IMG/VR virus record: IMGVR_UViG_3300045971_000577
Span: 248,001 to 312,000 of that record
DNA length: 64,000 nucleotides
Strand: one strand, 5' to 3'
In this document: in pieces, positions 7,570 to 56,286 of the stretch
Position numbering within the stretch: the stretch's first letter is position 1
Layout of the letters: the number at the start of each line of letters is the position of its first letter
The notes under the pieces: model-generated
What the model saw: the letters and a program-made list of their open reading frames with translations, nothing else
Databases searched by the model: none
What the model was told of the DNA's origin: nothing
Made by a program: the position numbers and the translations under genes

Positions 7570-7644
7570 TGGTGCGTCTGGAGGGAATCGAACCCTCGTC
7601 ATAGGATTTAGAATCCCGTACTCTAACCGCTGAGCTACAAACGC
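7570..7644 (-). tRNA. Amber suppressor tRNA (anticodon CTA)
   Basis: GCGTTTG/CAGACGC acceptor, ACCA; anticodon arm CGGGA-TTCTAAA-TCCTA; anticodon at 7609-7611. Confidence 0.85.
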
Positions 7645-12952: not shown

Positions 12953-13203
12953 GTTTTCAAACTAACCTAAACGAACTGTTTGCATCCGGTAACCCATATG
13001 CGGTGGCAATAGCAGAGAAGATAAAGAATATCGACGATGCGTATGCTAATAAACTCATCACTGCGGATGAAGCTAAAGACCTTCTCAACGATATGAAAAC
13101 GGAAGAAGCATTAGTTGATCTTGCCAACAATTTGCAAATAAAACTCTATGTTCAGCAAACAATCGATAAGTTGATATTTCTTGTCGAGAATGTGATTTTT
13201 TAG
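12949..13203 (+). CDS. Hypothetical protein coupled to the lipoprotein
   Basis: ATGA overlap. Confidence 0.7.
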   Translation: MSFQTNLNELFASGNPYAVAIAEKIKNIDDAYANKLITADEAKDLLNDMKTEEALVDLANNLQIKLYVQQTIDKLIFLVENVIF

Positions 13204-13208
13204 TCATA

Positions 13209-13234
13209 AGAATAGGAACCGAAGTTCCTATTCT
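13209..13234. terminator. Hairpin terminator between convergent units
   Basis: Perfect 11-bp stem with a UUCG loop on the minus strand. Confidence 0.75.
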
Positions 13235-13500
13235 GGATTTTCTGTTGCCAGGCATTCCTGCCCCGTGGTTTACCGCTTTTTAGGCAGCAAGAGCCTCAGT
13301 GTAAAACGAATCATTTGCGTTTACTTTTTGTTTTCTTCGATTTACGGTCGTTGCTCACCGAGCGATAAGAAGCCTACTCAATACCCAGGCGATTCCGGAT
13401 CGGGCCCATAACTAAAACTTCACAAAAGGCTTAGTGGTGGACCCGGGGGGATTCGAACCCCCTTGTTGAATGTCTTTCTGTTTCCTACTTTACGCTGTTA
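13235..13500 (-). ncRNA. ssrA: Circularly permuted (two-piece) tmRNA
   Basis: Acceptor piece (T-arm, CGGGTCC-ACCA ending 13435) lies upstream of the 5' end GGGCCCG (13407); tag ANDSFYTEALAA* at 13280-13318; G3:U70; outer ends approximate. Confidence 0.85.
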
Positions 13501-13620
13501 TTTTCCTTAATTCTGATTCATAATAGTGTAGCAGACCTACAATAGTCATACGATCAAATCTGTTACCGTATCCTAAATGCCGTCTGTAGTAATCAATCTG
13601 TGATTCAATAAATGATTTAC

Positions 13621-14046
13621 TCATGATAGCTTCTGACTCTTTACGATACGTCTAAGTTCGAGTTCTGTGTCTCGCTTCTTTTCCGTAGCTCGTTTGTCGT
13701 ACTCTTTCTTACCCTTTGCAAGTCCAATCGAGAGTTTGTATTTACCTCTCGTTGAATAAATCTTCAACGGCACAAGAGTTAGTCCACGTTCCTTTGTCTT
13801 ACCGATGAGACGTTGGATTTCTTTCTTATGCAAAAGCAACTTACGCGAACGGGTCATATCGTGCTCGGAGCCACCGATGTTAGCGCCCACAAGCATGATG
13901 TTACCATCCATAACTACGCAGTGAGTTCCGGCGATTGAACAGCTCTTAGCCGCAATCGCCTTTACTTCCCAGCCTTCCAGCTTCATTCCACACTCGTATT
14001 GCTCGAGTATTTCATAATCAAAGAAGGCCTTCTGATTTGAAATCAT
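13621..14046 (-). CDS. smpB: SsrA-binding protein
   Basis: [52 protein letters not shown]. Confidence 0.95.
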
Positions 14047-14810
14047 AATTTCTCTTTACAGTTATCAAAATGCCATCTATTCATCGATTCTTTACAGTTA
14101 TCAAAATGCCATCTATTCATCGATCCTTCACCGCCCGACCGTTGGCAGTGCGGGCACTCAACAGTATTTCTTTTTTTACCAAGCCTTGACAATCCGATGT
14201 TAATATTATGTTCTGCCGAATTAGGTTTACCTTTTGCTGCTAAACTCATTTTTTCACGAGTCTCTTGGCTTACTACCTTATTTCGCATTTTCTGTTTTGT
14301 TTCTTCGGACATATTTTGTTTGGCTATGCTCATCTTATATCTCGCATCATCTGACATTGTTTTGCCGATGTTAGCCTCGCGCATTTTCTGTTTTGTTTCT
14401 TCTGTCCGAATTTTACCTGTATTTTTATCACTTATTCTTTGACGAACTTCTTTGGGCATAGATTTACTAGCTAATCCGATAATTTTCCGGGTTGCTGCAG
14501 AATGACTATGACCGGATGCTCCTTCGCCGCCATCGGTTCTGTTTTCTAAAATCCCTGTGCCTAAATCTTTTCGACCATACCACCGAATCATTCTGCGTTC
14601 GATTGCAAATGCACCGAGCTCAGTTAGATTACATTCTAAAATTACAATACGTGATATATCTACAGGAGTGTGTACTCCTGTATTATTCTTTTTATTCCTA
14701 TGATCAACATAAGCTCGATCTCCTGTGCCTTTTCCGATATAGTACGGTGTGCCAACATTAGCGGTTGCCGAGTTACGTGATCTTAAATAGGCATATACAT
14801 AATAATTCAT
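14043..14810 (-). CDS. GIY-YIG-like homing endonuclease with NUMOD3 repeats
   Basis: YYVYAYLR...PYYIGKG; repeated S.ET(K/R).KM. Confidence 0.88.
14053..14124. repeat. Exact 36-bp tandem duplication
   Basis: [12 protein letters not shown] encoded twice. Confidence 0.9.
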
Positions 14811-16810: not shown

Positions 16811-17119
16811 TCATTTACAAGACTTCAGTGCAGTTAACAATTCAGCCGAGTAGGCCTTATGTAGTTCCCTGTCTGCTAATAATACCTTATTTTTCTCAAA
16901 GATATCTTTGTCAATTGTCAAAGAATCAAAATTGAAGACGGGAGATTGTGGAATCTCTGCCTTGCATGGTACAGAAATAGGTATCTCAACCTTTTGGACC
17001 ACGGTTTGGATCACAGGCTTATCAAAGGCACATGCAGAAACTGACAATGCCACCACAATCATAAGGATTCTACTTAGCACGTTGAATCTCCTGGTTGATA
17101 AGTTGGTTAGCCGCATCAC
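16811..17119 (-). CDS. o-spanin-like lipoprotein
   Basis: Lipobox LSVSAC; VEIPISVPC; overlaps the end of the i-spanin gene. Confidence 0.7.
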   Translation of the reverse strand: MMRLTNLSTRRFNVLSRILMIVVALSVSACAFDKPVIQTVVQKVEIPISVPCKAEIPQSPVFNFDSLTIDKDIFEKNKVLLADRELHKAYSAELLTALKSCK

Positions 17120-17471
17120 ATTTTGAGATATTTTGCGGAGCCATTGCTGCCATTAGTTCGTCTGCCTTCTTCTTTGCAGAGATTGTAGTTGCCTTTGCTG
17201 TGGCGATTGCACCTGCGTGGGATCTTTCACGAGCGTCAGCCTGTATCTGCATGTTATCAATTGCATCGTTCTGATCATTGATAGCAATTTGTAGGCTCTT
17301 TACTGAAGATTGAGATACGTCAAGCTTAGCCTGAATAACCTGCTTTTCAGCATTCAGCGTGGAGATATTGCTATTTAGAAACTTGATATACATACCCATT
17401 CCTGCAATAGTAGCAAGAAGGAGAGCAGCAACGATTAGTTTCCAGTTTCTGAGTACGAGTTCGATAAACAT
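17070..17471 (-). CDS. i-spanin-like protein
   Basis: N-terminal TM helix followed by coiled coil; GATAAATA upstream. Confidence 0.7.
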   Translation of the reverse strand: MFIELVLRNWKLIVAALLLATIAGMGMYIKFLNSNISTLNAEKQVIQAKLDVSQSSVKSLQIAINDQNDAIDNMQIQADARERSHAGAIATAKATTISAKKKADELMAAMAPQNISKCDAANQLINQEIQRAK

Positions 17472-18693: not shown

Positions 18694-18767
18694 TGGTAGG
18701 GCTGCAGGGAATCAAACCCTGGTTGACCGGTTAAAAGCCGGATATTCTATCATTGAATTACAACCCC
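18694..18767 (-). tRNA. tRNA-Lys(TTT)
   Basis: Loop CTTTTAA; CCA. Confidence 0.9.
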
Positions 18768-19262: not shown

Positions 19263-19353
19263 TGGCGGATGACCGGGGAGTCGAACCCCGAAGGCTGAGA
19301 TCATCAACCCGACAGATTAGCAATCTGCTCTGATACCATTACAGGAGTCATCC
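19263..19353 (-). tRNA. tRNA-Ser(GCT)
   Basis: Loop TTGCTAA; long variable arm; GCCA. Confidence 0.92.
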
Positions 19354-19360
19354 AAAAACG

Positions 19361-19411
19361 TAGTATACAACAAAAACGGCGCAGAGTCAAGTAGACCGTG
19401 CGCCGTTTTGA
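19361..19411 (-). terminator. Terminator after the cytochrome gene, overlapping a sigma70 promoter
   Basis: AAAACGGCGCA/TGCGCCGTTTT stem; TTGACT-N17-TATACT. Confidence 0.65.
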
Positions 19412-19426
19412 TAAAATTAGGTATTC

Positions 19427-20131
19427 TTACGCAAATACGGTCATCAAGGTTACCCCGGCCTTACGGATATATATCTGCGCATAGTTGATTAGCTTATCAA
19501 CTGCTGATGCACACTTGAAACTATTATCAATACTATGGCATGTTTCGCATGCATCCGATGTAGTTGGATGCGATGCGTAGCTTGATTTACCTTTTGCATA
19601 GTTACCATCGTGGCATGTTACGCAACCTGTGGTAACACCTGCGTGGATAGCTGAGTGGCTTACATCCCAATTGTTTGTATTGTGGCAAGCCAAGCAATCA
19701 GCAGTTGTAGGAATGTGTTCTGAAGGTTTCTTTCTTGCGCCCTGACCGTTATATGTTGCATTATGGCAAGCGTCACATCTCATTGAGGCAACTGAGGTAT
19801 GGCTCATATGCGGACTCACGAATGTTGTTGTGGTGTGGCACGAAGAACATTCAACAATAGTGGTCGGAATATGTCCAGTCGAAAAACCCATCGCCATGTA
19901 TGGTGTAGTACCTGTGTGGCAAATGGTGCATTGGCGCGGAGTACCAACGAATATACCAGCCTTGTGGCAAGATGCGCATGTGCTACATTTGCCTGTCGAT
20001 AGGTGTGCGCCGGTTAGAGGCCACATTGGGTGAGATTGTTCGTACATGGTGCATTCAGCAGCTGATGCCGATACCGGTGATAGTAGTGTTATAAAGGCTA
20101 CTACGATAGCAGCAAGAAAGCGTGAAATCAT
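19427..20131 (-). CDS. Exported multihaem c-type cytochrome (7 CxxCH)
   Basis: CASCH, CTICH, CSSCH, CDACH, CLACH, CVTCH, CETCH; HIPTT repeats; Sec-type signal ending SASA; GGAG RBS before ATG 20131. Confidence 0.9.
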   Translation of the reverse strand: MISRFLAAIVVAFITLLSPVSASAAECTMYEQSHPMWPLTGAHLSTGKCSTCASCHKAGIFVGTPRQCTICHTGTTPYMAMGFSTGHIPTTIVECSSCHTTTTFVSPHMSHTSVASMRCDACHNATYNGQGARKKPSEHIPTTADCLACHNTNNWDVSHSAIHAGVTTGCVTCHDGNYAKGKSSYASHPTTSDACETCHSIDNSFKCASAVDKLINYAQIYIRKAGVTLMTVFA

Positions 20132-20172
20132 GACTTCTCCAAAAATATAGAAGTATTTATCAAAGGATGCAC

Positions 20173-21825
20173 TCAAAATTCCTTTCTGGCACCAATAAAA
20201 TACGAAACTGATGTCTTCTTAGAATTGAGTAATGCCAATCTATCTATCGCATGCATATTTGAGATAGATGCCTGACCTTCGATTGATATATCATCGTTTA
20301 TTTTTTTGCTTGCCTTGACTGAGATAGTGGATGAACTTGAGGAAATATTTGCTGTTGAATGATGTTCGAATCTCAAAACACCCTCGGTTCGTATCTCACC
20401 AAACGTCTCGTTCAACACAAATGCACCGTACACGGACTTAGTGTTCGATGACGAAGAGATACTTGTCATAAAGATTCCAGTAGAATCTGCAGACATTATT
20501 TTCGACACAAATAAGTGAGCGTCGAGTGTTATTCTTGCATCACCGGGCTGATTATTTACAGAAGACATGCTAGAAAATTGAGTTCCTAAATATCCTATAA
20601 GATTAGGGGCCAGTGTTGTACTGCTACCAATAACAAATGTGGATACAATAGGAGTATGGTCCCTGACATAATTCACAATGTCGTTATCACTAAAACTTTG
20701 CCGTATTTCGCGAATATTCGAAAACTGTCTTAGCAGTTGAGTATCTAATCCCATGTTCAAAGCCTTATCGGCTGTCAATATCGGGGATCGTCTAATATCA
20801 GCTAGGGTATATATGGTCGTATTTCCTAACGGAAACGAATATTGCACCAAAATAAAATTCAGCCGGCTGTATATCGTGTCGAACTCAGATATCGATGTTA
20901 AAATTCTACCGGCCTTGAATGATCTATATTCAAACCCTATAGCATCTCGTTCTGTAAATCCATCTACAGTCTGTCTATTCACATACATGTCGATATAGCT
21001 ACTATCATCAATCTTTTTTTCAAGGGATGCACCAAAAAATCTCTTTCGCATGAAGGAACTTTCAGGTGTACCTGCAGACAGGGAACCGGTAAGATCTTCT
21101 TGTAATCTATACTTCACCAATACTCCGTCAAACTGACCGGTTGATGCATTTATAGATGATTGTCGTCCAATCTTTATGCTGTATCTGTCAAGCGTATCTT
21201 CGTATTCAGCTGAAAATATTCTGACATTATGCTGATTATTTGTTAAGTTATGAAAGTTTTCTCTATCTGTTGCCCTAAAAACTATTGTAAGTTGGCGATT
21301 GTCTTCGCGGAAGAATCCGCGTGCCCTAATATTTGTTGTCAGCCTAACAATAGAGTCTGATGAGGTTAGGTATGTAGAAACAGACCCATCTACTTTTCTT
21401 TCAGACCCAGTCTTTGATACGTTAGGCTTAGTCCTATCTACTGGCGGGGCGGCTGGCGCTGCTATTTCAAGCGCGATAAGTTTATACTTTATTCTCTGAG
21501 CTGCTTGTGAATTCGGATATAAAGATAGATAAAGTTGACTTTCGATCTTTGCTTTTTTGAATTGTTTTGTCAATTCGTATGCTTCGATAATCAATTCGTG
21601 CGCTTCTTGTTGAAACTCTGTAGGTACCAGCAGTATCTCGTTCAATATTTCTATTGCGGCTGCTGCGTTATTACCTGCCTTTACTAATGAGCGCGCCTCT
21701 TCCATCATAACCGACGGTGCCCGCGATGTTATTATCGTTTCTTCAGCATGTGACACCGATACTGTGTGTAAAAATACAACAATAGACAGAATGCGAAGTA
21801 CACATAGAAGATTATTAGATTTCAT
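20173..21825 (-). CDS. Outer-membrane beta-barrel (porin-like) protein with N-terminal TPR-like helices
   Basis: Signal peptide ending SHA; helical repeat region; alternating beta-strand pattern; C-terminal YFIGARKEF beta-signal. Confidence 0.7.
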   Translation of the reverse strand: MKSNNLLCVLRILSIVVFLHTVSVSHAEETIITSRAPSVMMEEARSLVKAGNNAAAAIEILNEILLVPTEFQQEAHELIIEAYELTKQFKKAKIESQLYLSLYPNSQAAQRIKYKLIALEIAAPAAPPVDRTKPNVSKTGSERKVDGSVSTYLTSSDSIVRLTTNIRARGFFREDNRQLTIVFRATDRENFHNLTNNQHNVRIFSAEYEDTLDRYSIKIGRQSSINASTGQFDGVLVKYRLQEDLTGSLSAGTPESSFMRKRFFGASLEKKIDDSSYIDMYVNRQTVDGFTERDAIGFEYRSFKAGRILTSISEFDTIYSRLNFILVQYSFPLGNTTIYTLADIRRSPILTADKALNMGLDTQLLRQFSNIREIRQSFSDNDIVNYVRDHTPIVSTFVIGSSTTLAPNLIGYLGTQFSSMSSVNNQPGDARITLDAHLFVSKIMSADSTGIFMTSISSSSNTKSVYGAFVLNETFGEIRTEGVLRFEHHSTANISSSSSTISVKASKKINDDISIEGQASISNMHAIDRLALLNSKKTSVSYFIGARKEF

Positions 21826-21839
21826 TTTATACAAATGAA

Positions 21840-21847
21840 TATTTATC
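21840..21847 (-). promoter_or_regulatory. T4-type late promoter motif in front of the porin-cytochrome pair
   Basis: GATAAATA ~15 nt before the ATG; the same motif precedes structural genes. Confidence 0.55.
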
Positions 21848-21852
21848 AGGCT

Positions 21853-21947
21853 GTCGAGCCAGGAATCGAACCTGGGATACCACTCTCTACGGAATCGAAC
21901 CGTCTCTTCGGGGTGCGCGCATTTCCCGGGGAACCAACCCTCACGAC
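21853..21947 (-). ncRNA. tRNA-like RNA with two T-loop hairpins
   Basis: ACGG-TTCGATT-CCGT and CCAGG-TTCGATT-CCTGG inside a GTCG/CGAC closing stem. Confidence 0.45.
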
Positions 21948-21952
21948 AATAT

Positions 21953-22029
21953 TGGCAAGGCAGGTGGGACTCGAACCCACGCAGTCATGGCTCAGAACCA
22001 CGCCACTCTTCCCCTTAAGCTACTGCCCA
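21953..22029 (-). tRNA. tRNA-Gln(CTG)
   Basis: Loop TTCTGAG; GCCA. Confidence 0.88.
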
Positions 22030-23260: not shown

Positions 23261-23352
23261 TGGCGGAAGTGGGCGGATTCGAACCCCCTAACCCTTGTTC
23301 AGGATCAAACAGTTTTCAAGACTGGGCTGCTCTCCAAGACAGTAGCACTTCC
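23261..23352 (-). tRNA. tRNA-Ser(TGA)
   Basis: Loop CTTGAAA; long variable arm; GCCA. Confidence 0.85.
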
Positions 23353-23970
23353 ATATAACTTTATAAAATCTTTCCCATATTTATCTATAACATATCTAAA
23401 TATAGGTTGCATATCTTTTTCATATAAAACTGTTACAGATGGATTGGCAGCTAGTTTAGCCTCCCACTGTTCAGATTTATATCCTTTTATTTCAATAAAA
23501 TTTCCATTAACTATAAAATCAGGAATGTAATTTCTATTCCTGTCATTCCATACATATGGCAATTTTGTGTTATTCTTCTGTATATTCGTTCCGTGATCTA
23601 AAGAATATATTACATAAGCCAATTCCCAACTACTGTCACAGAATATGCCTTTATACCAACCTTTCTTACCTCTACCCGATCCGTGTCTGTAACCACCAGT
23701 AGTTAATTTAGCCTTCTTACTGATTCTTTCTTTTCTTAGTTCTTCTAATTCGGGGGTAGATGCCCTGCCAGAGGTTGATCCTTTTATGCCTTTGTTCCAC
23801 GCTGTCTGCAACCCAGTCTTACCTGCATTCCAGGGAATAAATCCTTCATAAAAGCCGGATTTCCAATCTTTTATCTTGATTTTATGATTAGGATTTTCCT
23901 TGCAGTAAAGCTGATGTATTGAACATCCATTTACATTGGCTAAAATCCTCGAACAATAAATGCATTGCAT
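23305..23970 (-). CDS. PD-(D/E)xK (TnsA-like) homing endonuclease
   Basis: CDSSWELAY...YIPDFIV...IEIKGY; C-terminus encoded inside tRNA-Ser. Confidence 0.8.
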   Translation of the reverse strand: MQCIYCSRILANVNGCSIHQLYCKENPNHKIKIKDWKSGFYEGFIPWNAGKTGLQTAWNKGIKGSTSGRASTPELEELRKERISKKAKLTTGGYRHGSGRGKKGWYKGIFCDSSWELAYVIYSLDHGTNIQKNNTKLPYVWNDRNRNYIPDFIVNGNFIEIKGYKSEQWEAKLAANPSVTVLYEKDMQPIFRYVIDKYGKDFIKLYGSATVLESSPVLKTV

Positions 23971-30893: not shown

Positions 30894-33566
30894 TTAGGTG
30901 ATCAAATACATGAACGAGAAGTACACGTTCGCATTCCCGGTGGCGCTAGATTCGCCCATGAACCTTGCTCGGCCGTTCGTACCGTCAACGCCAATCGCAA
31001 AAGCCGTGGTAATGTACCCTGCCGTGGCAGTTCCACCAACGGCCCCGGTATTCGAAGCCGTGGATGCGATCGGATATGACATCGTGAAGTCCGTAGTCGC
31101 ACCTGCACCAAGTGACACGAATACGTATCCACTGACTGTCACTATGTTACCGACGCGCATCCAGTTACATGGCACGGCTGCCGATGAGTTTACATTCGCG
31201 CCATTGACGATTGTTGGAGTATACGTGCCAGAAGCGATGTACTGGTTTGTTGCTCCGGTGGCGCCGGCTGAGTTATTGTGCAGCGCGGTTCCGTACAACT
31301 GTCCGGTGCCGGTGACACGAAGCTTCTCAGATGAGCCAGCACCGCCCGTTGTGTTCGTACGGACAACGAACTGCGCTGGGATCGAGCCGTGGTAGCAGTC
31401 GAGTGTTGTGATGCCGGTTGAGAGGGCGCCGAGCGTAGTGATTCCGTCGCCGTTCGTTGGTTGAATTCCTAAGCCCGCGTCGCCGGTGATCTGTAACTTA
31501 CGCTGTGGAGAGTTAGTTCCGATGCCAACATTGCCAGTGCTGTCGATGCGCATGCGCTCCGGCAGCCCTGATCCAGAATAAAACCGCAGGCCAACGCTGT
31601 CATCAAATCCAGTCTCTGAGTAACCAGCCAACAGCGAACCACCGGGGTACGCACCAGTTTTGTAGCCGATGTTCATCACCTGACGTGCTGCGGTGTTTGC
31701 AGAAGTTTGGGAAAAGGTGATGGTTTCACTAACAGTAGTACCACCAATATCTAGTTTTGACCCAGGTGTAGTTGTGCCAATGCCAACATCACCCGCAGCA
31801 GTGATGCGCATCCGCTCAGTTGGGTTCGCGAATGAACCGCTTACCAACTGTGTACCAAATATCAAGTCACCGCCATATCCCGAATACCGAGATGACCAAA
31901 TTGCAGCATTTGGGTTTGAACCTGAAAATGTCAGTGCCGGGGATACCGACCCAGTATTAACAGCACCACCTTCAAGGAGGATGCCAACACGGTACGTCGA
32001 ACTGTCGGTGCCGGTCGTCACTGTAAGGCTGCCGGTCATCGTGTCACCGGTCTTCAACACATTGAGCGAAGACGCTCCGGTTACGTTTCCAGTTAGCGGG
32101 CCAGAGAATGTACCAGCAGTCATCGTACCAGCGATCGTGATTGCCGATGGTAACGAAACGGTTACGCCACCTGTTGAGGCCGAGACCGTTACTTGGTTTG
32201 CTGTACCGGTTAGTGATGTCACGCCAGTGTTCGCAAATGTATTTCCAGTCAATGAGATCCCAGTGCCGGCAGTGTATGTCCCAGATCCAGAGAACTGAAC
32301 GTACACGACGTTATCGGTGCCGAGCGTTGTTACTACAGCAGTTTCAGTCCAGCCAGTATCAGCTAGTGTTGTACCTTGAAGTACAAAGACTGCCGATCCG
32401 TCGACTTCAGCAGCCGTGTCAGCATCTGTACTGCGAGTCCATGCACCTGCAGCGACTACATATACGCCATTCTGCGAAACTGTTGTTTGGTTTTTCACCA
32501 GCACGCGATCTCCAACAGACAAGATAACATTATCAATTACTTGTGTACCGGACAGCGTGATATTCGTAGTCGTTGCAGCCTTCACCGATGTCTTCCAGTT
32601 TAGTCCGGCAATAGCGGCATCAACATAGTTTTTAGTTGTCAGATCGGTTCCGACAGTCGGCGCAGCCGCATTCGCAACCGAGAACCCACCCATGTTCAAG
32701 CTCTGCTGTTGAGTGCCAAGTGAAGTCAACGACGATGCTGTAACAGTGCTGTTCAGCGTTGATCCTGTTAGTGTGCCGGCGGCAGCAGCAACGGTAATAT
32801 CAGTAGATCCGTTAAACGAGACACCATTGATGTTCCGTGCGGTAGCCAGTGTTGTTGCAGTAGAAGCGTTACCAGTTAGTGGACCAGAAAATGCACCGGC
32901 AGTCACAGTACCTGTGACACCAAGCGAACCAAGCGTGCCTACAGAAGTTAGTGATGACGAAACTACATTCGATGCGAGCGTAGTGCCAGTTAGTGTGCCG
33001 GCAGTCGATGTGATTGCCGAGCCGTTGACTGTCGGGGCTGCTTTGAAATCAACTACGCCTGTAGAGCGTGCTACAGTGAACACCTGATTTTGCGTTGCTC
33101 CGTTATCGGCAACGCGAACAAACTCAAAGTTTGTACCGGCATCACCGCCGCCCTCGGCGGTACTGTTTGCCTGTAGCAACCAACGATCACTACCAGCTGT
33201 TTGTAGTTTTAACGAACGTATTGTTGACGCTGCATCAGAAACCAATATACCACGATTTGTTAGTGTACTGGTAGATGTGATTGCACCGGTTGTCTTGTTA
33301 ATTGACAGAAAAGATCCACCACCGAAAGTACCTGCATCATTGTATTGGATCTGGGTATCGGCACCACCAGGTGATCCGCCGGCGGCGGCTGACCACGAAA
33401 CATTAGTTCCGTCACTGGACAAAACTTTACCGGACTGGCCGATCTGTGTAGGAAGTAATGCATTGATTGCTGTTGGGGAAGTGGTCTGTCCTGTGCCACC
33501 TGCCGAGATCGGCAGAGGCCCGCCATTTGATTGAATTAAAATATTACCTGCAAATTGCACACCCAT
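30894..33566 (-). CDS. Tail-fibre-like structural protein
   Basis: Thr/Gly-rich; ERMRI..GNVGIGT repeats; N-terminus shared with 39063-40832. Confidence 0.75.
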   Translation of the reverse strand: MGVQFAGNILIQSNGGPLPISAGGTGQTTSPTAINALLPTQIGQSGKVLSSDGTNVSWSAAAGGSPGGADTQIQYNDAGTFGGGSFLSINKTTGAITSTSTLTNRGILVSDAASTIRSLKLQTAGSDRWLLQANSTAEGGGDAGTNFEFVRVADNGATQNQVFTVARSTGVVDFKAAPTVNGSAITSTAGTLTGTTLASNVVSSSLTSVGTLGSLGVTGTVTAGAFSGPLTGNASTATTLATARNINGVSFNGSTDITVAAAAGTLTGSTLNSTVTASSLTSLGTQQQSLNMGGFSVANAAAPTVGTDLTTKNYVDAAIAGLNWKTSVKAATTTNITLSGTQVIDNVILSVGDRVLVKNQTTVSQNGVYVVAAGAWTRSTDADTAAEVDGSAVFVLQGTTLADTGWTETAVVTTLGTDNVVYVQFSGSGTYTAGTGISLTGNTFANTGVTSLTGTANQVTVSASTGGVTVSLPSAITIAGTMTAGTFSGPLTGNVTGASSLNVLKTGDTMTGSLTVTTGTDSSTYRVGILLEGGAVNTGSVSPALTFSGSNPNAAIWSSRYSGYGGDLIFGTQLVSGSFANPTERMRITAAGDVGIGTTTPGSKLDIGGTTVSETITFSQTSANTAARQVMNIGYKTGAYPGGSLLAGYSETGFDDSVGLRFYSGSGLPERMRIDSTGNVGIGTNSPQRKLQITGDAGLGIQPTNGDGITTLGALSTGITTLDCYHGSIPAQFVVRTNTTGGAGSSEKLRVTGTGQLYGTALHNNSAGATGATNQYIASGTYTPTIVNGANVNSSAAVPCNWMRVGNIVTVSGYVFVSLGAGATTDFTMSYPIASTASNTGAVGGTATAGYITTAFAIGVDGTNGRARFMGESSATGNANVYFSFMYLIT

Positions 33567-33660
33567 ATAAACCCCCAATGTTTTTTATTTGTATATTTGT
33601 TAATACTTCTTTACGATGTACGAAGTATGTATATCTAGCTAGTATATTTATCATTTTACA
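32945..33660. repeat. ~700-bp segment homologous to 40211-40925
   Basis: Near-identical coding 5' ends and upstream DNA; ends approximate. Confidence 0.8.
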
Positions 33661-50953: not shown

Positions 50954-53536
50954 TTAGTTAGTTACTTGAGTCAACTCAACAGTGGCAACCCAACGGATTG
51001 TTTTGGCTGCCTGACCTGTTACTGTGATGTTCAACGAGCCGTTTGTTGTATCAGCCGCAACGGTAGCATTCCATGCAGCGTCAGACTTGAACACTGTTGT
51101 TCTCGACGATGCTGGCAAAACTGTCGATGCTGCGTTGGCGTCACGAACAATAGCGCCGTTGAATGTATACATTGCATATCCACCTGTAGCATCTGTTCTG
51201 CGGCCAACAAGCTGGATATTGAATGTCCAGGCTGAATTGTTTGGAAGAGCAAGACGCTGTGTAGCACCGTCAATAAAGAGCTGAGTTGCTGTTGCGGTTG
51301 TTGTGCTGTTTCTAAGGACTACACGAACTTGTTGAGCATCACCAGCTGTTGCAAAACTTCCGTTTGCTGTAGCAATAATACTTGCTGCGTTGGCAGAAGA
51401 TCCTGCACCAATAGCAATAGCGTTTGCTGCTGTCGACGATGCACCAGAACCAATCGCAACAGAGTTGTTACCAGACGCAACAAGTGCTACCGGGCTCGAT
51501 GGATTTTCCTTGAACAATACGATTGGGAGATCAGCATAAGCAAGTGTACGGAACGATGGTGCACCAGCAGAACCGTTAGGTGCTGCGAATACAGTATTCG
51601 CTGTCTGGCTTGCCAATGTTGCTGTCAATGTACCAGTTGTTGTTACTGGAGAACCTGTAACAGTGAACATAGCTGGTAGCGACAAACCAACGCTTGTAAC
51701 ACCGGTGTTGTTCAATGTAATCGAACCTGCGGCGTTTGTAATGCTCATTCCTGTACCAGCAGTCAATGTTGCTGCTACTGGTGCTGCGCCAGTCGAACCA
51801 ATTAGGATCTGACCGTTTGTTGGTGCTGCGGTAGTTGTTAGAAGACCAGCTGTACCAGAATACAAGAAACTGTTTGCTGTCAATCCAGAAACTGTCAAGC
51901 TTGTTCCGATTGTAACTGCTGCTGGAAGACCTAGTGTGACTGCGCCAGTTGCTGCCGAAACAGTAACTTGGTTTGCAGTACCTGCAAGCGATGTAACACC
52001 AGTGTTGGCGATTGTAACTGTACCGACACCTTGTGTAACAGAAATTGCTGTACCTGCTGTAACTGTCTTATATTCAAGTCCAGTTGCGCCTGCGTTTACA
52101 CCAAGAATCTGGTTAGCTGTACCAAGTGCCGAAAGGTTTGTACCACCGTTTGCAACTGGAAGAATGCCAGTTACGTGAGTTGTCAATCCAACCTTGCCCC
52201 AGCTTGGTGCTGTATTTACGCCACCGGAAATCAATACGTTGCCAGTTGCAACGTCTGCTAGCTTCGAAAGAGCAGATGTCGAACTTGCGTAAAGAATATC
52301 ACCAATTGCGTAAGTTGTCTGACCAGTGCCACCTAGTGTTGCTGCAACAGGAGATGTTAGCGAGAAAGAGTTACCTGTAAGTGTTAGACCTGTACCGGCA
52401 GTATATGATCCAGAACCGGAGAACTGAGCCCAAACAATATTTGATGACCCGATTGTGATTGGTGCTGCTGTTGTTTGTGTCCAACCCGAATCTGCTTGTG
52501 TGGAACCTTGGTCAACGTAAACTGTTGCACCAACTAGCTCTGTACCAACGTCTGCGTCTGTTGCGCGAGTTGGTGTACCTGCTGTAACGATATAGATACC
52601 GTTTTCAGTTTGTGCTGCTTGGTTCTTGATAAGGATACGATCACCAGTTGTAAGTGTGATACCGTCAACTGAAGAGCCGTTTGTGAACGATGTTGCAAGA
52701 GTACCAGCTACTGTGGTTGCTACGCGAACTGCTTGCTTCCACGATAGACCTGCAACAGAAGCGTCAACGTAGTTCTTGTTGGCTGCATCTGTACCTGCTG
52801 TAGGAAGTGGAAGACCAGTAACTGTGAAACCACCAGTCATTGTCAAGTTGCCTGACATTGAATCGCCAGCCTTGTTTACAGGCGTGTAACCAAGTGCGGT
52901 AGTGATATCAGACGTTGTAACTGCTGATGTAGCTGTTACCAAACCCTTACCGTTTACTGTAATCTTACGGAATGTGTCAGACTGCGGCGAAGCGTTAACT
53001 GTTGCCAAAGTAAGTGCAATACCTGCGCCAGACGATGTACCTGTTGCGTCACCGGTGGCTGCCAAGTTTGTTGCCGCGGTGACAAGACCTTTGGCATTCA
53101 CTGTCTGAACTGCAAATTGTCCAACGTTCGAGTTAACTGTTGCAAGAGTGGTTGCAGCACCAGACGATGTAATGTCGCCTGTTAGGTTACCTGCTGCTGT
53201 TACCAATCCCTTGCCGTTTACAGTCACGGAAGCAAATGTGCCAACGTTTGAGTTAACGGTTGCAAGTGTTGTTCCGATTGTGCCTGCGCCAGAGCCAGTA
53301 ACGTCACCGGTTAGGGTGATTGTTGTTGTGCCTGTTGCAATAGTTGTCCATGCACCTGCGATATAACCTTCGACATTGCTGATGTCGGTGTTGTAACGTA
53401 GAGCACCGTTTGAAAGACCAGTCACTGGTCTTTCAAGTGTTGTACCTAGTGGTAGCTCGAATCCGCCTGACCCACCAACTGTCAATAAGTTGGTAAGCTC
53501 CGGCGTGATCGTCTCGGTGGAATAGTCAAAATCCAT
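50954..53536 (-). CDS. Fibre-like structural protein (860 aa)
   Basis: ATVNS..VTVNGKGLVT repeats; C-terminal IRWVA..E..EVTN domain. Confidence 0.75.
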   Translation of the reverse strand: MDFDYSTETITPELTNLLTVGGSGGFELPLGTTLERPVTGLSNGALRYNTDISNVEGYIAGAWTTIATGTTTITLTGDVTGSGAGTIGTTLATVNSNVGTFASVTVNGKGLVTAAGNLTGDITSSGAATTLATVNSNVGQFAVQTVNAKGLVTAATNLAATGDATGTSSGAGIALTLATVNASPQSDTFRKITVNGKGLVTATSAVTTSDITTALGYTPVNKAGDSMSGNLTMTGGFTVTGLPLPTAGTDAANKNYVDASVAGLSWKQAVRVATTVAGTLATSFTNGSSVDGITLTTGDRILIKNQAAQTENGIYIVTAGTPTRATDADVGTELVGATVYVDQGSTQADSGWTQTTAAPITIGSSNIVWAQFSGSGSYTAGTGLTLTGNSFSLTSPVAATLGGTGQTTYAIGDILYASSTSALSKLADVATGNVLISGGVNTAPSWGKVGLTTHVTGILPVANGGTNLSALGTANQILGVNAGATGLEYKTVTAGTAISVTQGVGTVTIANTGVTSLAGTANQVTVSAATGAVTLGLPAAVTIGTSLTVSGLTANSFLYSGTAGLLTTTAAPTNGQILIGSTGAAPVAATLTAGTGMSITNAAGSITLNNTGVTSVGLSLPAMFTVTGSPVTTTGTLTATLASQTANTVFAAPNGSAGAPSFRTLAYADLPIVLFKENPSSPVALVASGNNSVAIGSGASSTAANAIAIGAGSSANAASIIATANGSFATAGDAQQVRVVLRNSTTTATATQLFIDGATQRLALPNNSAWTFNIQLVGRRTDATGGYAMYTFNGAIVRDANAASTVLPASSRTTVFKSDAAWNATVAADTTNGSLNITVTGQAAKTIRWVATVELTQVTN

Positions 53537-53550
53537 TTTTATGGTTCCCT

Positions 53551-56286
53551 TTAGTTAGTTACTTCTGTTGTTTGCACTGTTGCAACCCAACGAATTGTTT
53601 TAGCAGTTTCGCCTGTGACACGAACTCTCAACGAACCAGCAGTTGTATCAACAGTTACAGCGGCATCCCATGCATTGTTTGTTTCGCCGATGATTGTCTT
53701 CGATGGTGTGCCAACGAATGTGATCGACCCAGCGGTAGCGTCTTTCTTTGCTACGCCAACAAATCTATATCCAGCGCCACCACCTGTTGCATCTGTTCTA
53801 CGACCTGCAACCAAGATGTCGAATGTAAACAACGAGTTGTCAGGAAGAACTAGACGCTCAGATGCTCCGTCAAGGAATAGTTCTGTAACACCGTTTGTTG
53901 TGGTGATGTTACGAAGAACATACATGCCTCTTTGTGCGTCGCCTGCTGTAGCGAAGCTGCCGTTTGCAAAGGCTTTTTGCCCATAAAGTGTTGCATTTGC
54001 GCCGGTTCCTACAGCAAGAGAATCAACTGCTGTTGCTGCTGATCCGCTACCTAGAGCGACTGCATTTGTACCTGTTGCTACTGGAGTAACTGGTGTTGAT
54101 GGATTTTCTCTGTATAGCTTCAATGCGCCTGTTAGGTCAGCGAATACAAGTCCGCGGAATGCAGGCTGGCCTGATGCTGCGTCTGGTGCTGCAAATACTG
54201 AATTAGCAGATTGGCTGTTTAGAGTCAATGTCAATGTACCGGTGCTTGTTACTGGAGAACCTGTAACTGCGTAGATTGGTGTTGTAGATGCATCTGCAAG
54301 CGCGACCGAAGTAACACCTGTGTTTGCTACAGTGATAACACCTGCAGAGTTTGTAACGCTAATACCTGTGCCTGCTGTTACAGTCTTGTACTCAGATGAT
54401 GTTCCTGCAGCATTTACGCCAAGGACTTGGTTAGCTGTTCCAAGTGCTGTCAATCCAGATCCACCGTTAGCTGGGTTCAATGTACCTGCCATTGTGATGA
54501 CGCCGGATGTTGTTACTGGGCCACCGCTGAATGTCAAGCCAGTTGTGCCACCGCTAACATCGATAGAAGTAACAGTACCACCTGTTGAGCTAATTGTGAT
54601 TGCACCCGCTGCGTTGCCGATGCTGATACCAGTTCCTGCTGTTAGTGTTGCTAGGGTATATCCGCTACCGTTGCCGATTAGAAGTTCACCGTTGCCAACT
54701 GGACCTGCTACACCTGTGCCGCCATATGCTGCGCCAATGACACCTGCATTCCATGTGCCTGTTGTTACTGTACCAAGTGTCGTGATGGATGATTGACCAA
54801 CGTAACCAGAAGCGATATCAACAGTGTATGTTGGGCCTGCTGCCAATGCTGTTGTGATACGGTTAGCCGTACCTTGAATCATCAATGTGCCACCTAGGGA
54901 AATAGTTTCTGTACCAACGTTATCAGCGTCAAGTGTAATCGAAGAGTTCTGAAGCATTGCGTTTGTTACGCCAGCTGCATTTACCTTCAATCCTGATGAC
55001 GATTGTGTCAAGCTCGAACCTTCAAGAACCAATGTTAGTTGGCCGGAAGTCAATACAGAAGTAAGTTGAACTGCCTGGTTTGCAACAATGTCAAGACCAA
55101 TTTCTTGTGTTGGTAAGTTAGTAATACCAGCACCAAGATCGGCACTAATAACGTTACCGGCAACAGTAATACCTGTACCGCCGGTGTATGCGCCTGCGCC
55201 TGAGAATTGTGTCCATGTTTGACCAGCGAAGCTGCTCAATGTTGCTGTTTGTACCCAACCGGAGTCAGCGTAGGTTGTTCCTTCATTAACAAATACTGCC
55301 GCACCATTTAGGTCAGTGTAAGGCGTTGCATCCGAAGCACGAGCCATAGTGTATGTTGCACCAGTTACTGTTACGACATAGATACCGTTATCGGCTCCAG
55401 ATGTTTCTGCAGTTAGCAAAACTCTGTCTTGGTCGAGAATAGTATAACCGTCGATAACCAATGGTGTAGAACCAGCTAGTGGTACGTTCACATCAGCAAA
55501 TGCTGCAACGGCTTGCTTCCAGCTTAGGCCAGATACCAAGTTGTCGACATAATTCTTATTTGCTGCATCTGTTGCGTTAGTTGGATCTGGAAGGCCAGTA
55601 ACTGTTGCTCCACCAATAAACGATAGGTTGCCGGACATGGAATCGCCGGTGATGTTTACATATGTACCATCTACAAGTGCGGTAATATCACCTGTTGTTA
55701 CAGCGGTGTTACCAGTTACGCGGCCCTTAGTGTCAAGTGTAACCTTAACAAAGTTACCTGTCGAAGCCTGTGTAACTGTAGCAAGATCGATAGTTGGAGA
55801 CGAAGCTTGGCCGTCACCGTTTGTTACGTCGATATTGCCGGCTGTACCGGTAATGCTACGATCAACAAATCCACCTGCGGTTTGAACTACAAATCCTGTT
55901 CCGGTCAATGCTGAAAGATCTTGCAAATTCTGCGACAATGCCAACGCAAATGTACCGCTGTTGGTAATAGTTTGTGTTGCGCCTGCGCTAACACTCAAAC
56001 CAGTACCAGTTGTTACGGTTACAGATGTTACTGTACCACCGCCCGTGGACAATGCTACCCATGTTGTTCCGTCGTGAAATTCGAGGTCGTTTGCATCGTC
56101 GTTAAAACGCAACATAGCCGCAGTAGGCGATGCTGGACGCTCTGCAAGAGTTCCTGATGGTAGTGTTAGTGCGCCTGTGCCGATAATTGTAAGTACACCA
56201 GCTTGACCGCCTAGTGGTGGTAGTTCTGTTACGTCAAGCGTTTGAAGTCCACCGTAAATCGCGCCTGTATCAAAGTTGAAATCCAT
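53551..56286 (-). CDS. Fibre-like structural protein (911 aa)
   Basis: Paralogue of the preceding gene; same C-terminal domain. Confidence 0.75.
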   Translation of the reverse strand: MDFNFDTGAIYGGLQTLDVTELPPLGGQAGVLTIIGTGALTLPSGTLAERPASPTAAMLRFNDDANDLEFHDGTTWVALSTGGGTVTSVTVTTGTGLSVSAGATQTITNSGTFALALSQNLQDLSALTGTGFVVQTAGGFVDRSITGTAGNIDVTNGDGQASSPTIDLATVTQASTGNFVKVTLDTKGRVTGNTAVTTGDITALVDGTYVNITGDSMSGNLSFIGGATVTGLPDPTNATDAANKNYVDNLVSGLSWKQAVAAFADVNVPLAGSTPLVIDGYTILDQDRVLLTAETSGADNGIYVVTVTGATYTMARASDATPYTDLNGAAVFVNEGTTYADSGWVQTATLSSFAGQTWTQFSGAGAYTGGTGITVAGNVISADLGAGITNLPTQEIGLDIVANQAVQLTSVLTSGQLTLVLEGSSLTQSSSGLKVNAAGVTNAMLQNSSITLDADNVGTETISLGGTLMIQGTANRITTALAAGPTYTVDIASGYVGQSSITTLGTVTTGTWNAGVIGAAYGGTGVAGPVGNGELLIGNGSGYTLATLTAGTGISIGNAAGAITISSTGGTVTSIDVSGGTTGLTFSGGPVTTSGVITMAGTLNPANGGSGLTALGTANQVLGVNAAGTSSEYKTVTAGTGISVTNSAGVITVANTGVTSVALADASTTPIYAVTGSPVTSTGTLTLTLNSQSANSVFAAPDAASGQPAFRGLVFADLTGALKLYRENPSTPVTPVATGTNAVALGSGSAATAVDSLAVGTGANATLYGQKAFANGSFATAGDAQRGMYVLRNITTTNGVTELFLDGASERLVLPDNSLFTFDILVAGRRTDATGGGAGYRFVGVAKKDATAGSITFVGTPSKTIIGETNNAWDAAVTVDTTAGSLRVRVTGETAKTIRWVATVQTTEVTN

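Follow-up and report, generated by a model that had tools for sequence, protein, structure and literature searches.

The porin-cytochrome pair comprises two adjacent genes on the minus strand, lying among the tRNA genes of the 369-kb myophage contig IMGVR_UViG_3300045971_000577. All coordinates are those of the 64,000-nt stretch of this contig that was analysed, termed the window. The pair is bounded by tRNA-Ser and tRNA-Gln genes, and the array around it contains 33 tRNAs and a tmRNA. The individual features are itemized in order of position.

19263–19353, minus strand: tRNA-Ser, the downstream boundary of the unit
19371–19409, minus strand: intrinsic-terminator-like hairpin (19373–19409) with U-run, from sequence and folding
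19427–20131, minus strand: gene for a heptahaem c-type cytochrome, 234 aa from the ATG at 20131, with the stop codon TAA at 19427–19429
19433–19516, minus strand: C-terminal amphipathic helix of the cytochrome, residues 221–248, following an invariant F-K-C, from the model
19535–19978, minus strand: span of the seven haem-binding CxxCH motifs, from Cys67 to His214 (ORF numbering), by motif count
20060–20131, minus strand: cytochrome signal peptide, from the translation, without a lipobox
20154–20162, minus strand: second copy of TGATAAATA, 22 nt before the ATG of the cytochrome gene
20173–21834, minus strand: gene for a TPR and beta-barrel outer-membrane protein, a homologue of PCC3 porins (see below), from the ORF, the model and its relatives
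20176–20205, minus strand: C-terminal beta-signal of the barrel protein, its last ten residues, ending in F (...YFIGARKEF), from the translation
20176–21405, minus strand: 22-strand beta-barrel, residues 144–553, from DSSP on the model (pLDDT about 95)
20659–20772, minus strand: three helices inserted between barrel strands 13 and 14, residues 355–392, from the model
21460–21717, minus strand: periplasmic TPR-like domain of six helices, residues 40–125, from the model
21745–21825, minus strand: signal peptide of the barrel protein, residues 4–30, from the translation (helix 7–24 in the model, at low pLDDT)
21840–21848, minus strand: copy of the promoter-like motif TGATAAATA, 5 nt before the barrel ORF
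21953–22029, minus strand: tRNA-Gln, the upstream boundary of the unit

The window is of phage origin, with PHROG matches to the major head protein (1e-93), tail sheath (2e-76) and tail fibres. It also encodes a spanin-like pair with a lipobox, and a host with an outer membrane is therefore indicated. At 87.7 bits, with the cut-off at 84, the tmRNA fits the model for the betaproteobacterial permuted type; a betaproteobacterial host is possible on this basis, which is only a weak hint. The pair has the setting of an auxiliary gene unit, inside a bona fide phage genome, with phage flanks and no sign of a recent host fragment, while any metabolic effect is inferred.

On the 3′ side of the pair the hairpin folds at −23.2 kcal/mol (z = −6.4), and none of 200 shuffled sequences was as stable. 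A simple terminator scan overlooked it because the loop is long. The exact T4 late motif TATAAATA is absent at the pair and is not enriched in the window. By contrast the motif GATAAATA is present in 24 copies where 3.4 are expected, and TGATAAATA in 12 copies against 1.0 expected. GATAAATA stands before both genes of the pair, and 19 of its 24 sites lie 4–66 nt upstream of an ORF start, including those of tail-fibre, virion and spanin genes. Scanning for the sigma-70 consensus gave no promoter above chance, and none upstream of the pair. That the pair is expressed late, along with the genes for virion and lysis proteins, is an inference from the shared motif only, there being no expression data.

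The barrel ORF has 553 codons beginning with TTG at 21834 and ends with TGA at 20173–20175; translation probably starts at the ATG at 21825 rather than at the TTG. Following the chain from its N-terminus, the signal peptide is predicted from the sequence to be removed by signal peptidase I after SHA, leaving a protein that begins with EE. The TPR-like domain comes next, and resembles BamD and CpoB. It gives a weak match to the BamD model TIGR03302, and the profile of the barrel family matches BamD, CpoB and designed TPR proteins in the PDB. The remainder of the protein forms the barrel. An AlphaFold2 model of the complete 553-aa protein (pLDDT 92.8) contains signal peptide, TPR domain and a 22-strand barrel. 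The three-helix insertion is probably an extracellular or lumen-facing loop, as inferred from strand parity, and adjoins the best-conserved residues of the family, of which R348, P351 and G362 are nearly invariant. The family consensus at the C-terminus is Y-x-G-x-R-x-D-F, with G548 invariant and R550 nearly so. With a signal peptide, an even number of antiparallel strands and a C-terminal aromatic beta-signal, the protein fulfils the criteria for an outer-membrane barrel.

All matches of the model to the PDB in Foldseek are outer-membrane barrels with a probability of 1.00, yet they are generic (TM 0.33–0.41). Two candidate families were considered and rejected. Neither BcsC nor PgaA, representing exporters, is among the top 50 matches. 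MtrB also falls outside the top 50, and there is no match to the Pfam family MtrB_PioB; MtrB has 26 strands, compared to 22 in the phage barrel. A sequence search of the PDB returned matches to the TPR domain only, without MtrB or PioB.

The second gene lies in a longer ORF (19427–20176, minus strand), the numbering of which is used here. Its true start is likely to be the ATG at 20131, which has GGAG five bases upstream (20137–20140). Cleavage of the signal peptide is inferred to occur between ASA and AEC, a motif that is invariant in 32 homologues of 45–70% identity on which conservation was scored. The seven haem motifs are likewise invariant (C67/C70/H71, C83/C86/H87, C110/C113/H114, C134/C137/H138, C161/C164/H165, C185/C188/H189 and C210/C213/H214), as are seven further histidines (H49, H58, H102, H126, H154, H178 and H203) that are candidate distal ligands. 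Matches to the Pfam families Cytochrome_C7 (34.7 bits) and Paired_CXXCH_1 (28.9 bits) exceed the curated cut-offs. By its CxxCH motifs, export signal and conserved distal ligands the protein is a multihaem c-type cytochrome; the attachment of haem is inferred from the sequence. The haems are densely packed, with about 28 residues per haem. The model of the whole cytochrome is poor (pLDDT 57), apart from the C-terminal helix, where the mean pLDDT over ten-residue blocks from 221 to 249 is 54, 77 and 86. Searching the PDB by sequence returned nothing informative, with weak matches to UndA, GSU1996, MtrC and MtrA, the last matching the cytochrome profile at E = 0.09 only. Membership of the MtrA family was rejected, the DmsE/MtrA model TIGR03508 scoring 26.1 bits against a cut-off of 192.2, with seven haems in place of ten.

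The original prediction, made without database searches, had described much of this. The two-gene unit in the tRNA region, the signal-peptide protein with TPR-like helices, a long beta region and the terminal aromatic signal, the exported 234-aa protein with seven CxxCH motifs and the terminator after the pair all held. It had named the failure of the ~550-aa protein to model as a barrel as a refuting outcome, and this did not occur. The promoter motif that it placed before the pair is there as well, in the form of the enriched motif and not of the exact T4 one.

The module is found in 22 IMG/VR contigs and at eight phage-like loci in public assemblies (L001–L008), three of which are the same records as IMG/VR loci. 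The pair recurs with the same gene order in >25 independent phage contigs of 11–369 kb from many samples, and barrel and cytochrome are linked at all phage loci other than the truncated ones. An additional cytochrome paralogue with 4–6 haems is frequent beside the phage pair, and same-strand tRNA arrays adjoin the module in 10 of 18 phage loci. Exhaustive HMMER searching gave 913 representatives related to the barrel at E ≤ 1e-3. In the tree of these proteins the phage barrels form one side, sister to the cellular group, comprising 53 rows with a support of 99. Eighteen of the rows derive from phage contigs, and the other 35 each represent a 50%-identity cluster of the exhaustive search. Of these 35, the contigs of three were looked up and all are phage-borne, as are three others that are near-identical to rows from phage contigs.

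In many large phages the module is under purifying selection, with a dN/dS of 0.07–0.19, and of 0.05–0.11 for the cytochrome. Of the two proteins the barrel diverges far more quickly, with 49% identity in one example where the cytochrome has 84%. The GC content of the module tracks that of its flanks (r = 0.99 over the range 34–59%), with values of 0.409 and 0.418 respectively in this contig. Far from being a one-off, the module is a trait conserved among many large phages. It forms an old phage-specific clade, and phages appear to have acquired the module on at least two occasions. There was no match among the isolated phage genomes of INPHARED (tblastn with both proteins, and megablast with 20 kb of the window), and nothing significant for barrel or cytochrome in PHROGs or PADLOC.

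These data bear on whether the locus is an assembly chimera or host contamination, in which bacterial DNA has been misjoined to a phage contig, as the original prediction had cautioned. In favour of a chimera, the nearest functional relatives are cellular, and the evidence is from sequence, with no read data. Against it, >25 independent phage contigs share the module and its gene order, the phage proteins form a separate clade with flank-like GC content, and the pair lies inside a same-strand tRNA array and carries the promoter-like motif of the phage. Recurrence, a clade of its own, purifying selection and matched GC therefore make a chimera very unlikely, and the concern is answered as far as sequence allows.

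Homologues of the barrel occur at no fewer than 345 cellular loci, of which 80 were fetched. There the barrel homologue follows a cytochrome with 19–73 haems on the same strand, with a 21-haem cytochrome further upstream. The 19–73-haem proteins match the phage cytochrome with E values down to 1e-149, and the homologues of barrel and cytochrome are linked in most of the fetched loci. All six loci that were checked also encode a membrane protein of ~300 aa carrying two WxxxHx13H motifs. We assign these loci to PCC3 because the 21-haem and 19–73-haem cytochromes and the membrane protein fit the published definition, which includes an inner-membrane protein of ~300 aa; a cluster in Amphritea encodes a 63-haem and a 21-haem cytochrome (He et al. 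2017, PMC5566968). Scans of genomes with broad barrel alignments failed, having too few conserved stretches, but a tighter alignment of the marine-type cellular proteins worked. The cellular sample is skewed towards Gammaproteobacteria and Thermodesulfobacteriota, and the porins of freshwater betaproteobacterial PCC3 clusters were not directly compared.

The phage barrel matches cellular PCC3 porins with E values from 1e-16 to 1e-37. The phage cytochrome is collinear with residues ~36–226 of the large PCC3 cytochrome, that is, with its first seven haems. About 190 N-terminal residues align, with best-domain scores of 71–88 bits, and the C-terminal half of the phage protein also matches the repeats of the large one. 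It has no match to the 21-haem PCC3 cytochrome. Both phage proteins are thus homologues of the outer-membrane half of PCC3, and in both systems a porin and a cytochrome, each exported, are encoded side by side. The ‘porin-cytochrome-like pair’ of the original prediction therefore held, now by homology instead of resemblance. The cellular homologues it sought were found in PCC3 clusters; of the systems that it had named for comparison, MtrAB, MtoAB and PioAB are not the relatives.

The differences from PCC3 are substantial. The outer cytochrome of PCC3 has 10–85 haems with a median of 34 (PMC5566968, PMC9900912), compared to seven in the phage. The gene order is reversed, the phage barrel coming first. 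PCC3 porins have 650–1000 aa and mostly carry SPOR, SH3 or AMIN domains, whereas the phage barrel has 553 aa and none of these, and belongs to a clade apart from them. The phage cytochrome has three extra invariant cysteines relative to the large PCC3 cytochrome, together with the new C-terminal helix, which is common to the phage homologues; the large cellular cytochromes end in a different tail. Lastly, PCC3 includes a periplasmic cytochrome with 21–27 haems and the inner-membrane protein, and the phage lacks both. No such periplasmic cytochrome is encoded in the 64-kb window, where the only other ORF with CxxCH has a single motif, and the regions flanking the other phage loci contain none either. 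No ORF in the window has the motif of the inner-membrane protein (five helices, two WX3HX13H motifs), and no ccm gene was found there. A pattern scan of IMG/VR phages for CcmF also found none, using exact patterns of low sensitivity. Within the scope of the window, the phage copy is the outer-membrane half of PCC3 only. At L118, a locus that looks cellular, the same short module adjoins ccm genes and the end of a PCC3 cytochrome with 21/24 haems. By analogy, this layout is consistent with a short module cooperating with a long periplasmic cytochrome.

A role without electron transfer across the membrane should be considered, in which the barrel would serve as a general porin or as a BcsC/PgaA-like exporter, and the cytochrome a periplasmic redox buffer, sink or detoxifier. 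The generic fold matches allow this, and there is no model of a complex between barrel and cytochrome. Polysaccharide exporters, too, have a TPR domain followed by a C-terminal barrel. Against this, the genes are linked in all the non-truncated phage loci and most of the fetched cellular ones, and the cellular relatives cluster with cytochromes and ccm genes and not with glycosyltransferases. We regard this explanation as unlikely.

Porin-cytochrome complexes serve Gram-negative bacteria in electron exchange with minerals, humic substances, electrodes and partner cells. Like MtrAB, MtoAB and PioAB, the phage pair unites a haem-dense periplasmic cytochrome with a large barrel in a proposed trans-membrane electron route, and it resembles MtoAB and PioAB in having just two genes, with no separate surface cytochrome. 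The Geobacter conduits (OmbB-OmaB-OmcB and ExtABCD) also combine a barrel with cytochromes of the c7 or doubled-CXXCH type, having the same Pfam domains; yet there is no detectable sequence kinship between the barrels, and these conduits have a lipoprotein surface cytochrome that the phage pair lacks. Among phages, the amoC-phages carry oprP and a NapC/NirT cytochrome (bioRxiv 10.64898/2026.06.18.733297), and are similarly large freshwater phages with outer-membrane barrels or multihaem cytochromes. Their genes are single and nearly identical to those of the host, whereas the pair described here is linked and forms an old phage-specific clade. No phage porin-cytochrome module was found in the full-text literature searched, in the huge-phage survey paper or in phage sequence and fold collections. 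The original prediction knew of no such auxiliary metabolic gene, and no paper describing one came to light in that literature.

On balance we lean, by a modest margin, towards the pair being a phage-resident, miniaturised outer-membrane half of PCC3, a minimal electron conduit expressed late; its function is inferred. Late in infection both proteins would be exported by the host Sec machinery, and the host Ccm system would load seven haems onto the cytochrome. BAM would place the barrel in the outer membrane of the host by way of the C-terminal beta-signal, with the TPR domain remaining periplasmic. The conserved N-terminal head of the cytochrome may serve to dock it in the barrel or through it, an arrangement inferred without a model of the complex. 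Seven haems would form a chain of roughly 6–7 nm, enough to span the outer membrane. The complex would then connect periplasmic carriers of the host to electron donors or acceptors outside the cell, for example Fe, Mn or humic substances. The phage has neither the 21-haem cytochrome nor the inner-membrane protein, and the pair therefore cannot act alone; the most plausible carriers would come from the host itself, namely its 21-haem cytochrome of PCC3 and the inner-membrane protein that partners it. Respiration or electron uptake would be kept going while virions are built, the direction of flow and the substrate being left unspecified.

There are reservations. PCC3 is itself a bioinformatic prediction, no member having been purified or assayed (PMC5566968; Gallionellaceae survey PMC9900912), and the function of the phage pair is therefore an inference upon an inference. 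The timing implied by a late motif is not usual for a gene that boosts the energy supply of the host. Furthermore, selection acting on a receptor exposed at the surface could explain the fast divergence of the barrel equally well.

The last point leads to an alternative, in which the pair acts in receptor replacement or superinfection exclusion. The PCC3 porin of the host, with the very long cytochrome at its surface, would be a receptor for phages. A short, divergent version made by the phage would displace or mask this host complex, blocking further adsorption or the loss of progeny on debris, with electron transfer kept only to the extent the cell needs. What the phage carries is precisely the half of PCC3 that is exposed at the surface, its external part being reduced from 19–73 haems to seven, and the barrel evolves faster than the cytochrome, as would a surface protein in an arms race. 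Moreover, porins are known in phages, since BFVD contains phage barrels like OmpC and OprP, besides the oprP of the amoC-phages. On the other hand, all seven haem sites and the distal histidines are invariant over deep divergence, with the low dN/dS of the cytochrome; a mask would need no intact redox chain, and the invariant haem sites therefore count against this explanation. Many phages also retain the second paralogue with 4–6 haems, there is no match to defence or exclusion models in PADLOC, and there is no evidence of any kind for PCC3 as a receptor. We consider a receptor-based role improbable. Of the two functions offered by the original prediction, auxiliary metabolism or superinfection exclusion, neither has been singled out, function being inferred only.

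Returning to the conduit, a bolder reading is that large freshwater phages install the smallest porin-cytochrome conduit yet proposed, with seven haems running through a barrel of 22 strands, and thereby rewire the extracellular electron exchange of their hosts. The function being inferred, we see the case for and against this as evenly balanced. If true, extracellular electron transfer would join the processes that are manipulated by viruses, and in anoxic waters infection would have a direct effect on redox cycling. PCC3 would have a modular and exchangeable outer-membrane part, and the mature pair, of about 520 and 195 aa, would provide a compact and tractable model for this untested family.

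The window derives from an IMG/VR contig of 369,145 bp (UViG_3300045971_000577) and is that of a tailed phage, on the basis of PHROG matches to a major head protein (1e-93), a tail sheath (2e-76), several tail-fibre proteins and Ig-domain virion proteins. Three proteins of 860-911 aa (30894-33578, 50954-53536 and 53551-56286, minus strand) have a 'head decoration' / Ig-like PHROG domain region in common, and are paralogous large virion proteins. The minus strand holds all 33 tRNA genes of the window together with a tmRNA, and the module is flanked by two of these tRNAs:

19263-19353, minus strand: tRNA-Ser, on one flank of the pair
19373-19409: hairpin followed by a U-run (fold -23.2 kcal/mol, z = -6.4)
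19427-20176, minus strand: cytochrome ORF; the probable ATG at 20131 gives 234 aa, with GGAG five bases 5' of it
20173-21834, minus strand: barrel ORF, 553 aa, with a probable ATG at 21825
21953-22029, minus strand: tRNA-Gln, on the other flank

The array has several further features, all on the minus strand. ARAGORN calls a tRNA-Pyl with anticodon CTA (7570-7644), a potential amber suppressor. General recoding of TAG is not apparent, since the large structural genes of the window contain no in-frame stops when read with the standard code. One tRNA (18697-18767) is found by Rfam only (61 bits) and is absent from the ARAGORN list. In the interval from tRNA-Gln to the barrel gene (21850-21950), where no tRNA is called, two T-arm-like GGTTCGATTCC repeats could be the remains of a decayed one. 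Two ORFs among the tRNAs (14043-14810 and 23305-23970), one with a NUMOD3 motif, are probably homing endonucleases.

The barrel protein starts with a signal peptide and ends in an aromatic beta-signal. AlphaFold2, run on an alignment of 56 relatives, gave a model (mean pLDDT 92.8, pTM 0.74) comprising a signal helix, six TPR-like helices (residues 40-125) and 22 beta strands (residues 144-552), with a three-helix insertion between strands 13 and 14. The protein is thus predicted to be a TPR domain joined to a 22-strand barrel; failure to model as a barrel would have refuted the original prediction, and this did not occur. Foldseek matches to the PDB were exclusively outer-membrane barrels (MOMP, the FimD and PapC ushers, Occ and Omp porins) with a probability of 1.00 and TM-scores of merely 0.33-0.41, so this is a barrel without a close solved relative. 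MtrB was absent from the top 50 of these matches, a BFVD search found no close viral structure, and sequence matches to solved structures (BamD, CpoB) were confined to the TPR part. By simple geometry a barrel of 22 strands measures about 4 nm across between C-alpha atoms, the size of TonB-dependent receptor barrels, which hold a plug of 150 residues. A haem chain could therefore fit inside, although this is inferred from geometry without a model of the complex.

An exhaustive HMMER search places the barrel in a family of 913 cluster representatives (E<=1e-3), in which relatives of 700-1000 aa carry SPOR, SH3 or AMIN domains N-terminal to the TPR. A scan of species-representative genomes found at least 345 loci. 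The best 80 were fetched, and are mostly from Gammaproteobacteria (Sedimenticola, Thiogranum, Woeseiaceae, Chromatiaceae, Amphritea, tubeworm symbionts and a Methylococcaceae MAG), the remainder being from Thermodesulfobacteriota and Nitrospirota. Most of the 80, and all that have sufficient upstream sequence, carry a same-strand cytochrome gene 5' of the barrel gene; its product is homologous to the phage cytochrome and has 19-73 CxxCH motifs when full-length. Farther upstream there is usually a cytochrome of ~520-560 aa with exactly 21 CxxCH, preceded in all six loci inspected by a membrane protein of ~300 aa with two WxxxHx13H motifs (the cytochrome has 24 haems in one cellular locus, L032). 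These loci are the porin-cytochrome cluster PCC3 as defined by He et al. 2017, including the 63 and 21 haems of Amphritea (PMC5566968). PCC3 has been modelled but never biochemically characterised (PMC9900912).

The phage cytochrome has a signal peptide (ASA|AEC, without a lipobox) and seven CxxCH motifs, with Pfam Cytochrome_C7 and Paired_CXXCH_1 above their curated thresholds. The exported 234-aa protein with seven haem motifs of the original prediction is confirmed. In phmmer alignments residues ~21-219 are collinear with residues ~36-226 of the large cellular cytochromes, so that the phage protein corresponds to their head; in addition, its C-terminal part, with four of the haems, matches every one of the 5-17 internal repeats in these giants. 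No phmmer match was found to the 21-haem PCC3 cytochrome. Across 32 phage-type homologues (45-70% identity) all seven CxxCH motifs, seven further histidines and three extra cysteines are invariant. The histidines are candidate distal ligands, and bis-His haems are therefore suggested from sequence alone. The haem density of ~28 residues per haem is typical of wire-like cytochromes. The phage cytochromes end in an amphipathic helix following an invariant F-K-C, whereas the large PCC3 cytochromes have a different, aromatic-terminated tail. Both proteins are homologous to components of the outer-membrane half of PCC3. That the genes encode an unrelated porin and periplasmic cytochrome is unlikely.

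The module recurs in phages. A search with the cytochrome found ~115 relatives, and in IMG/VR it is present on 22 contigs of 11 to 369 kb. Public assemblies contributed eight phage-like loci (L001-L008), three of them the same records as IMG/VR loci; one lies in a 210-kb NCBI record and one in a 273-kb JGI contig. The barrel gene precedes the heptahaem gene in every untruncated locus, and in most a 4-6-haem paralogue with the same N-terminal head lies between them; the two-gene form is found in the window and three other loci (L015, L018 and L030). The barrel tree is divided by a well-supported branch (support 99): 53 rows, made up of phage-context sequences and their closest unlabelled relatives, fall on one side of it, and the cellular sequences on the other. 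The two unlabelled members looked up were both in phage-like contexts. For unsaturated pairs dN/dS is 0.07-0.19 for both genes, the barrel diverging faster than the cytochrome. Module GC equals flank GC (r = 0.99) across phages of 34-59% GC. Same-strand tRNA arrays adjoin the module in 10 of 18 phage loci, with up to 20 tRNAs within 8 kb.

Loci with a dense same-strand tRNA array at the module, as in the window: L001, L005, L010, L011, L015, L019, L028, L114, L115

The dN/dS, GC match and tRNA arrays are further evidence that the module is a phage trait of long residence. Taken with the recurrence and phage-side clade, these make recent capture from a host very unlikely, and likewise the chimeric assembly over which the original prediction had expressed concern, albeit without a check of read coverage. 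A second acquisition has probably occurred independently in another phage lineage. Two loci of 37% GC (L116 7155-9656 and L117 890-3391), whose neighbours include GP38, PhoH and a pyrimidine-dimer excision gene, encode a 551-aa barrel preceded by a 9-haem cytochrome, and this barrel groups with cellular PCC3 porins.

The pair resembles MtoAB and PioAB in combining a barrel with one inserted cytochrome (the insertion being inferred for the phage protein) without a separate surface cytochrome. Membership of that family was rejected, as the defining models were not met. It is homologous to PCC3, yet of the five features that define this cluster it fails on three, namely the haem number, the periplasmic cytochrome and the inner-membrane protein, and the gene order is reversed in the phage. 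No phage-encoded porin-cytochrome module was reported in the literature searched, including a huge-phage survey paper. The closest precedent in print comes from amoC-phages, which carry a single host-like NapC/NirT cytochrome and an oprP porin (bioRxiv 10.64898/2026.06.18.733297).

A late-promoter motif had been predicted at the pair, and this holds in corrected form: TATAAATA is not enriched in the window, while 12 copies of TGATAAATA are present where 1.0 is expected, and 24 copies of GATAAATA where 3.4 are expected, an enrichment of about seven-fold for the latter. At 19 of its 24 sites GATAAATA lies 4-66 nt 5' of an ORF start (example sites in the window are 17479, 23975, 33645, 38183, 40860, 40924, 50906, 57510 and 59456), the ORFs including the barrel and cytochrome genes, two tail-fibre genes, other virion-block genes and a spanin-like gene. 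It differs by one base from the T4 late promoter, and by analogy is probably a late-type promoter element of this phage.

Apart from the cytochrome just one ORF of the window contains CxxCH, a single motif, and none contains WxxxHx13H. Neither the window nor the regions flanking the module in the phage loci showed a ccm gene, and a CcmF pattern scan of IMG/VR gave no match. Export, haem attachment, barrel insertion and the inner-membrane link must therefore be supplied by the host. The short module can adjoin a long periplasmic cytochrome. In L118 (1-7088), a short contig of 57% GC without tRNAs that may be recipient cell, donor lineage or phage, the end of a 21/24-haem PCC3 cytochrome, a CcmH/I-like gene and ccmF flank a phage-type module that consists of a barrel, a 5-haem and a 7-haem gene; the barrel of this contig falls inside the phage clade despite these neighbours.

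Indications of the host are not decisive. An overlapping spanin-like pair (16811-17119 and 17070-17471, minus strand) comprises a 133-aa protein that has a membrane helix at its N-terminus, its gene preceded by TGATAAATA, and a 102-aa protein with a lipobox (V-S-A-C), and implies a diderm. The tmRNA (13189-13535, minus strand; tag peptide ANDSFYTEALAA) matches tmRNA_permuted (89.6 bits) and just exceeds the cut-off of 84 for beta_tmRNA (87.7 bits), a weak hint that the host might be betaproteobacterial. PCC3 is reported in freshwater Betaproteobacteria (PMC5566968), which does not settle the matter.

The pair could instead serve receptor replacement or superinfection exclusion. The truncated external part of the phage version and the fast-evolving barrel speak for this, but the strict conservation of every haem site speaks against it and we consider it unlikely. 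The reading best supported, which we hold with moderate confidence, is a minimal outer-membrane conduit, its function and late expression both being inferred. BAM would insert the barrel with the TPR domain in the periplasm, and the heptahaem protein would dock in or through it via the conserved N-terminal head that it has in common with the large PCC3 cytochromes. The conduit would then be joined to the quinone pool by periplasmic carriers of the host, of which its 21-haem PCC3 cytochrome is the most plausible.
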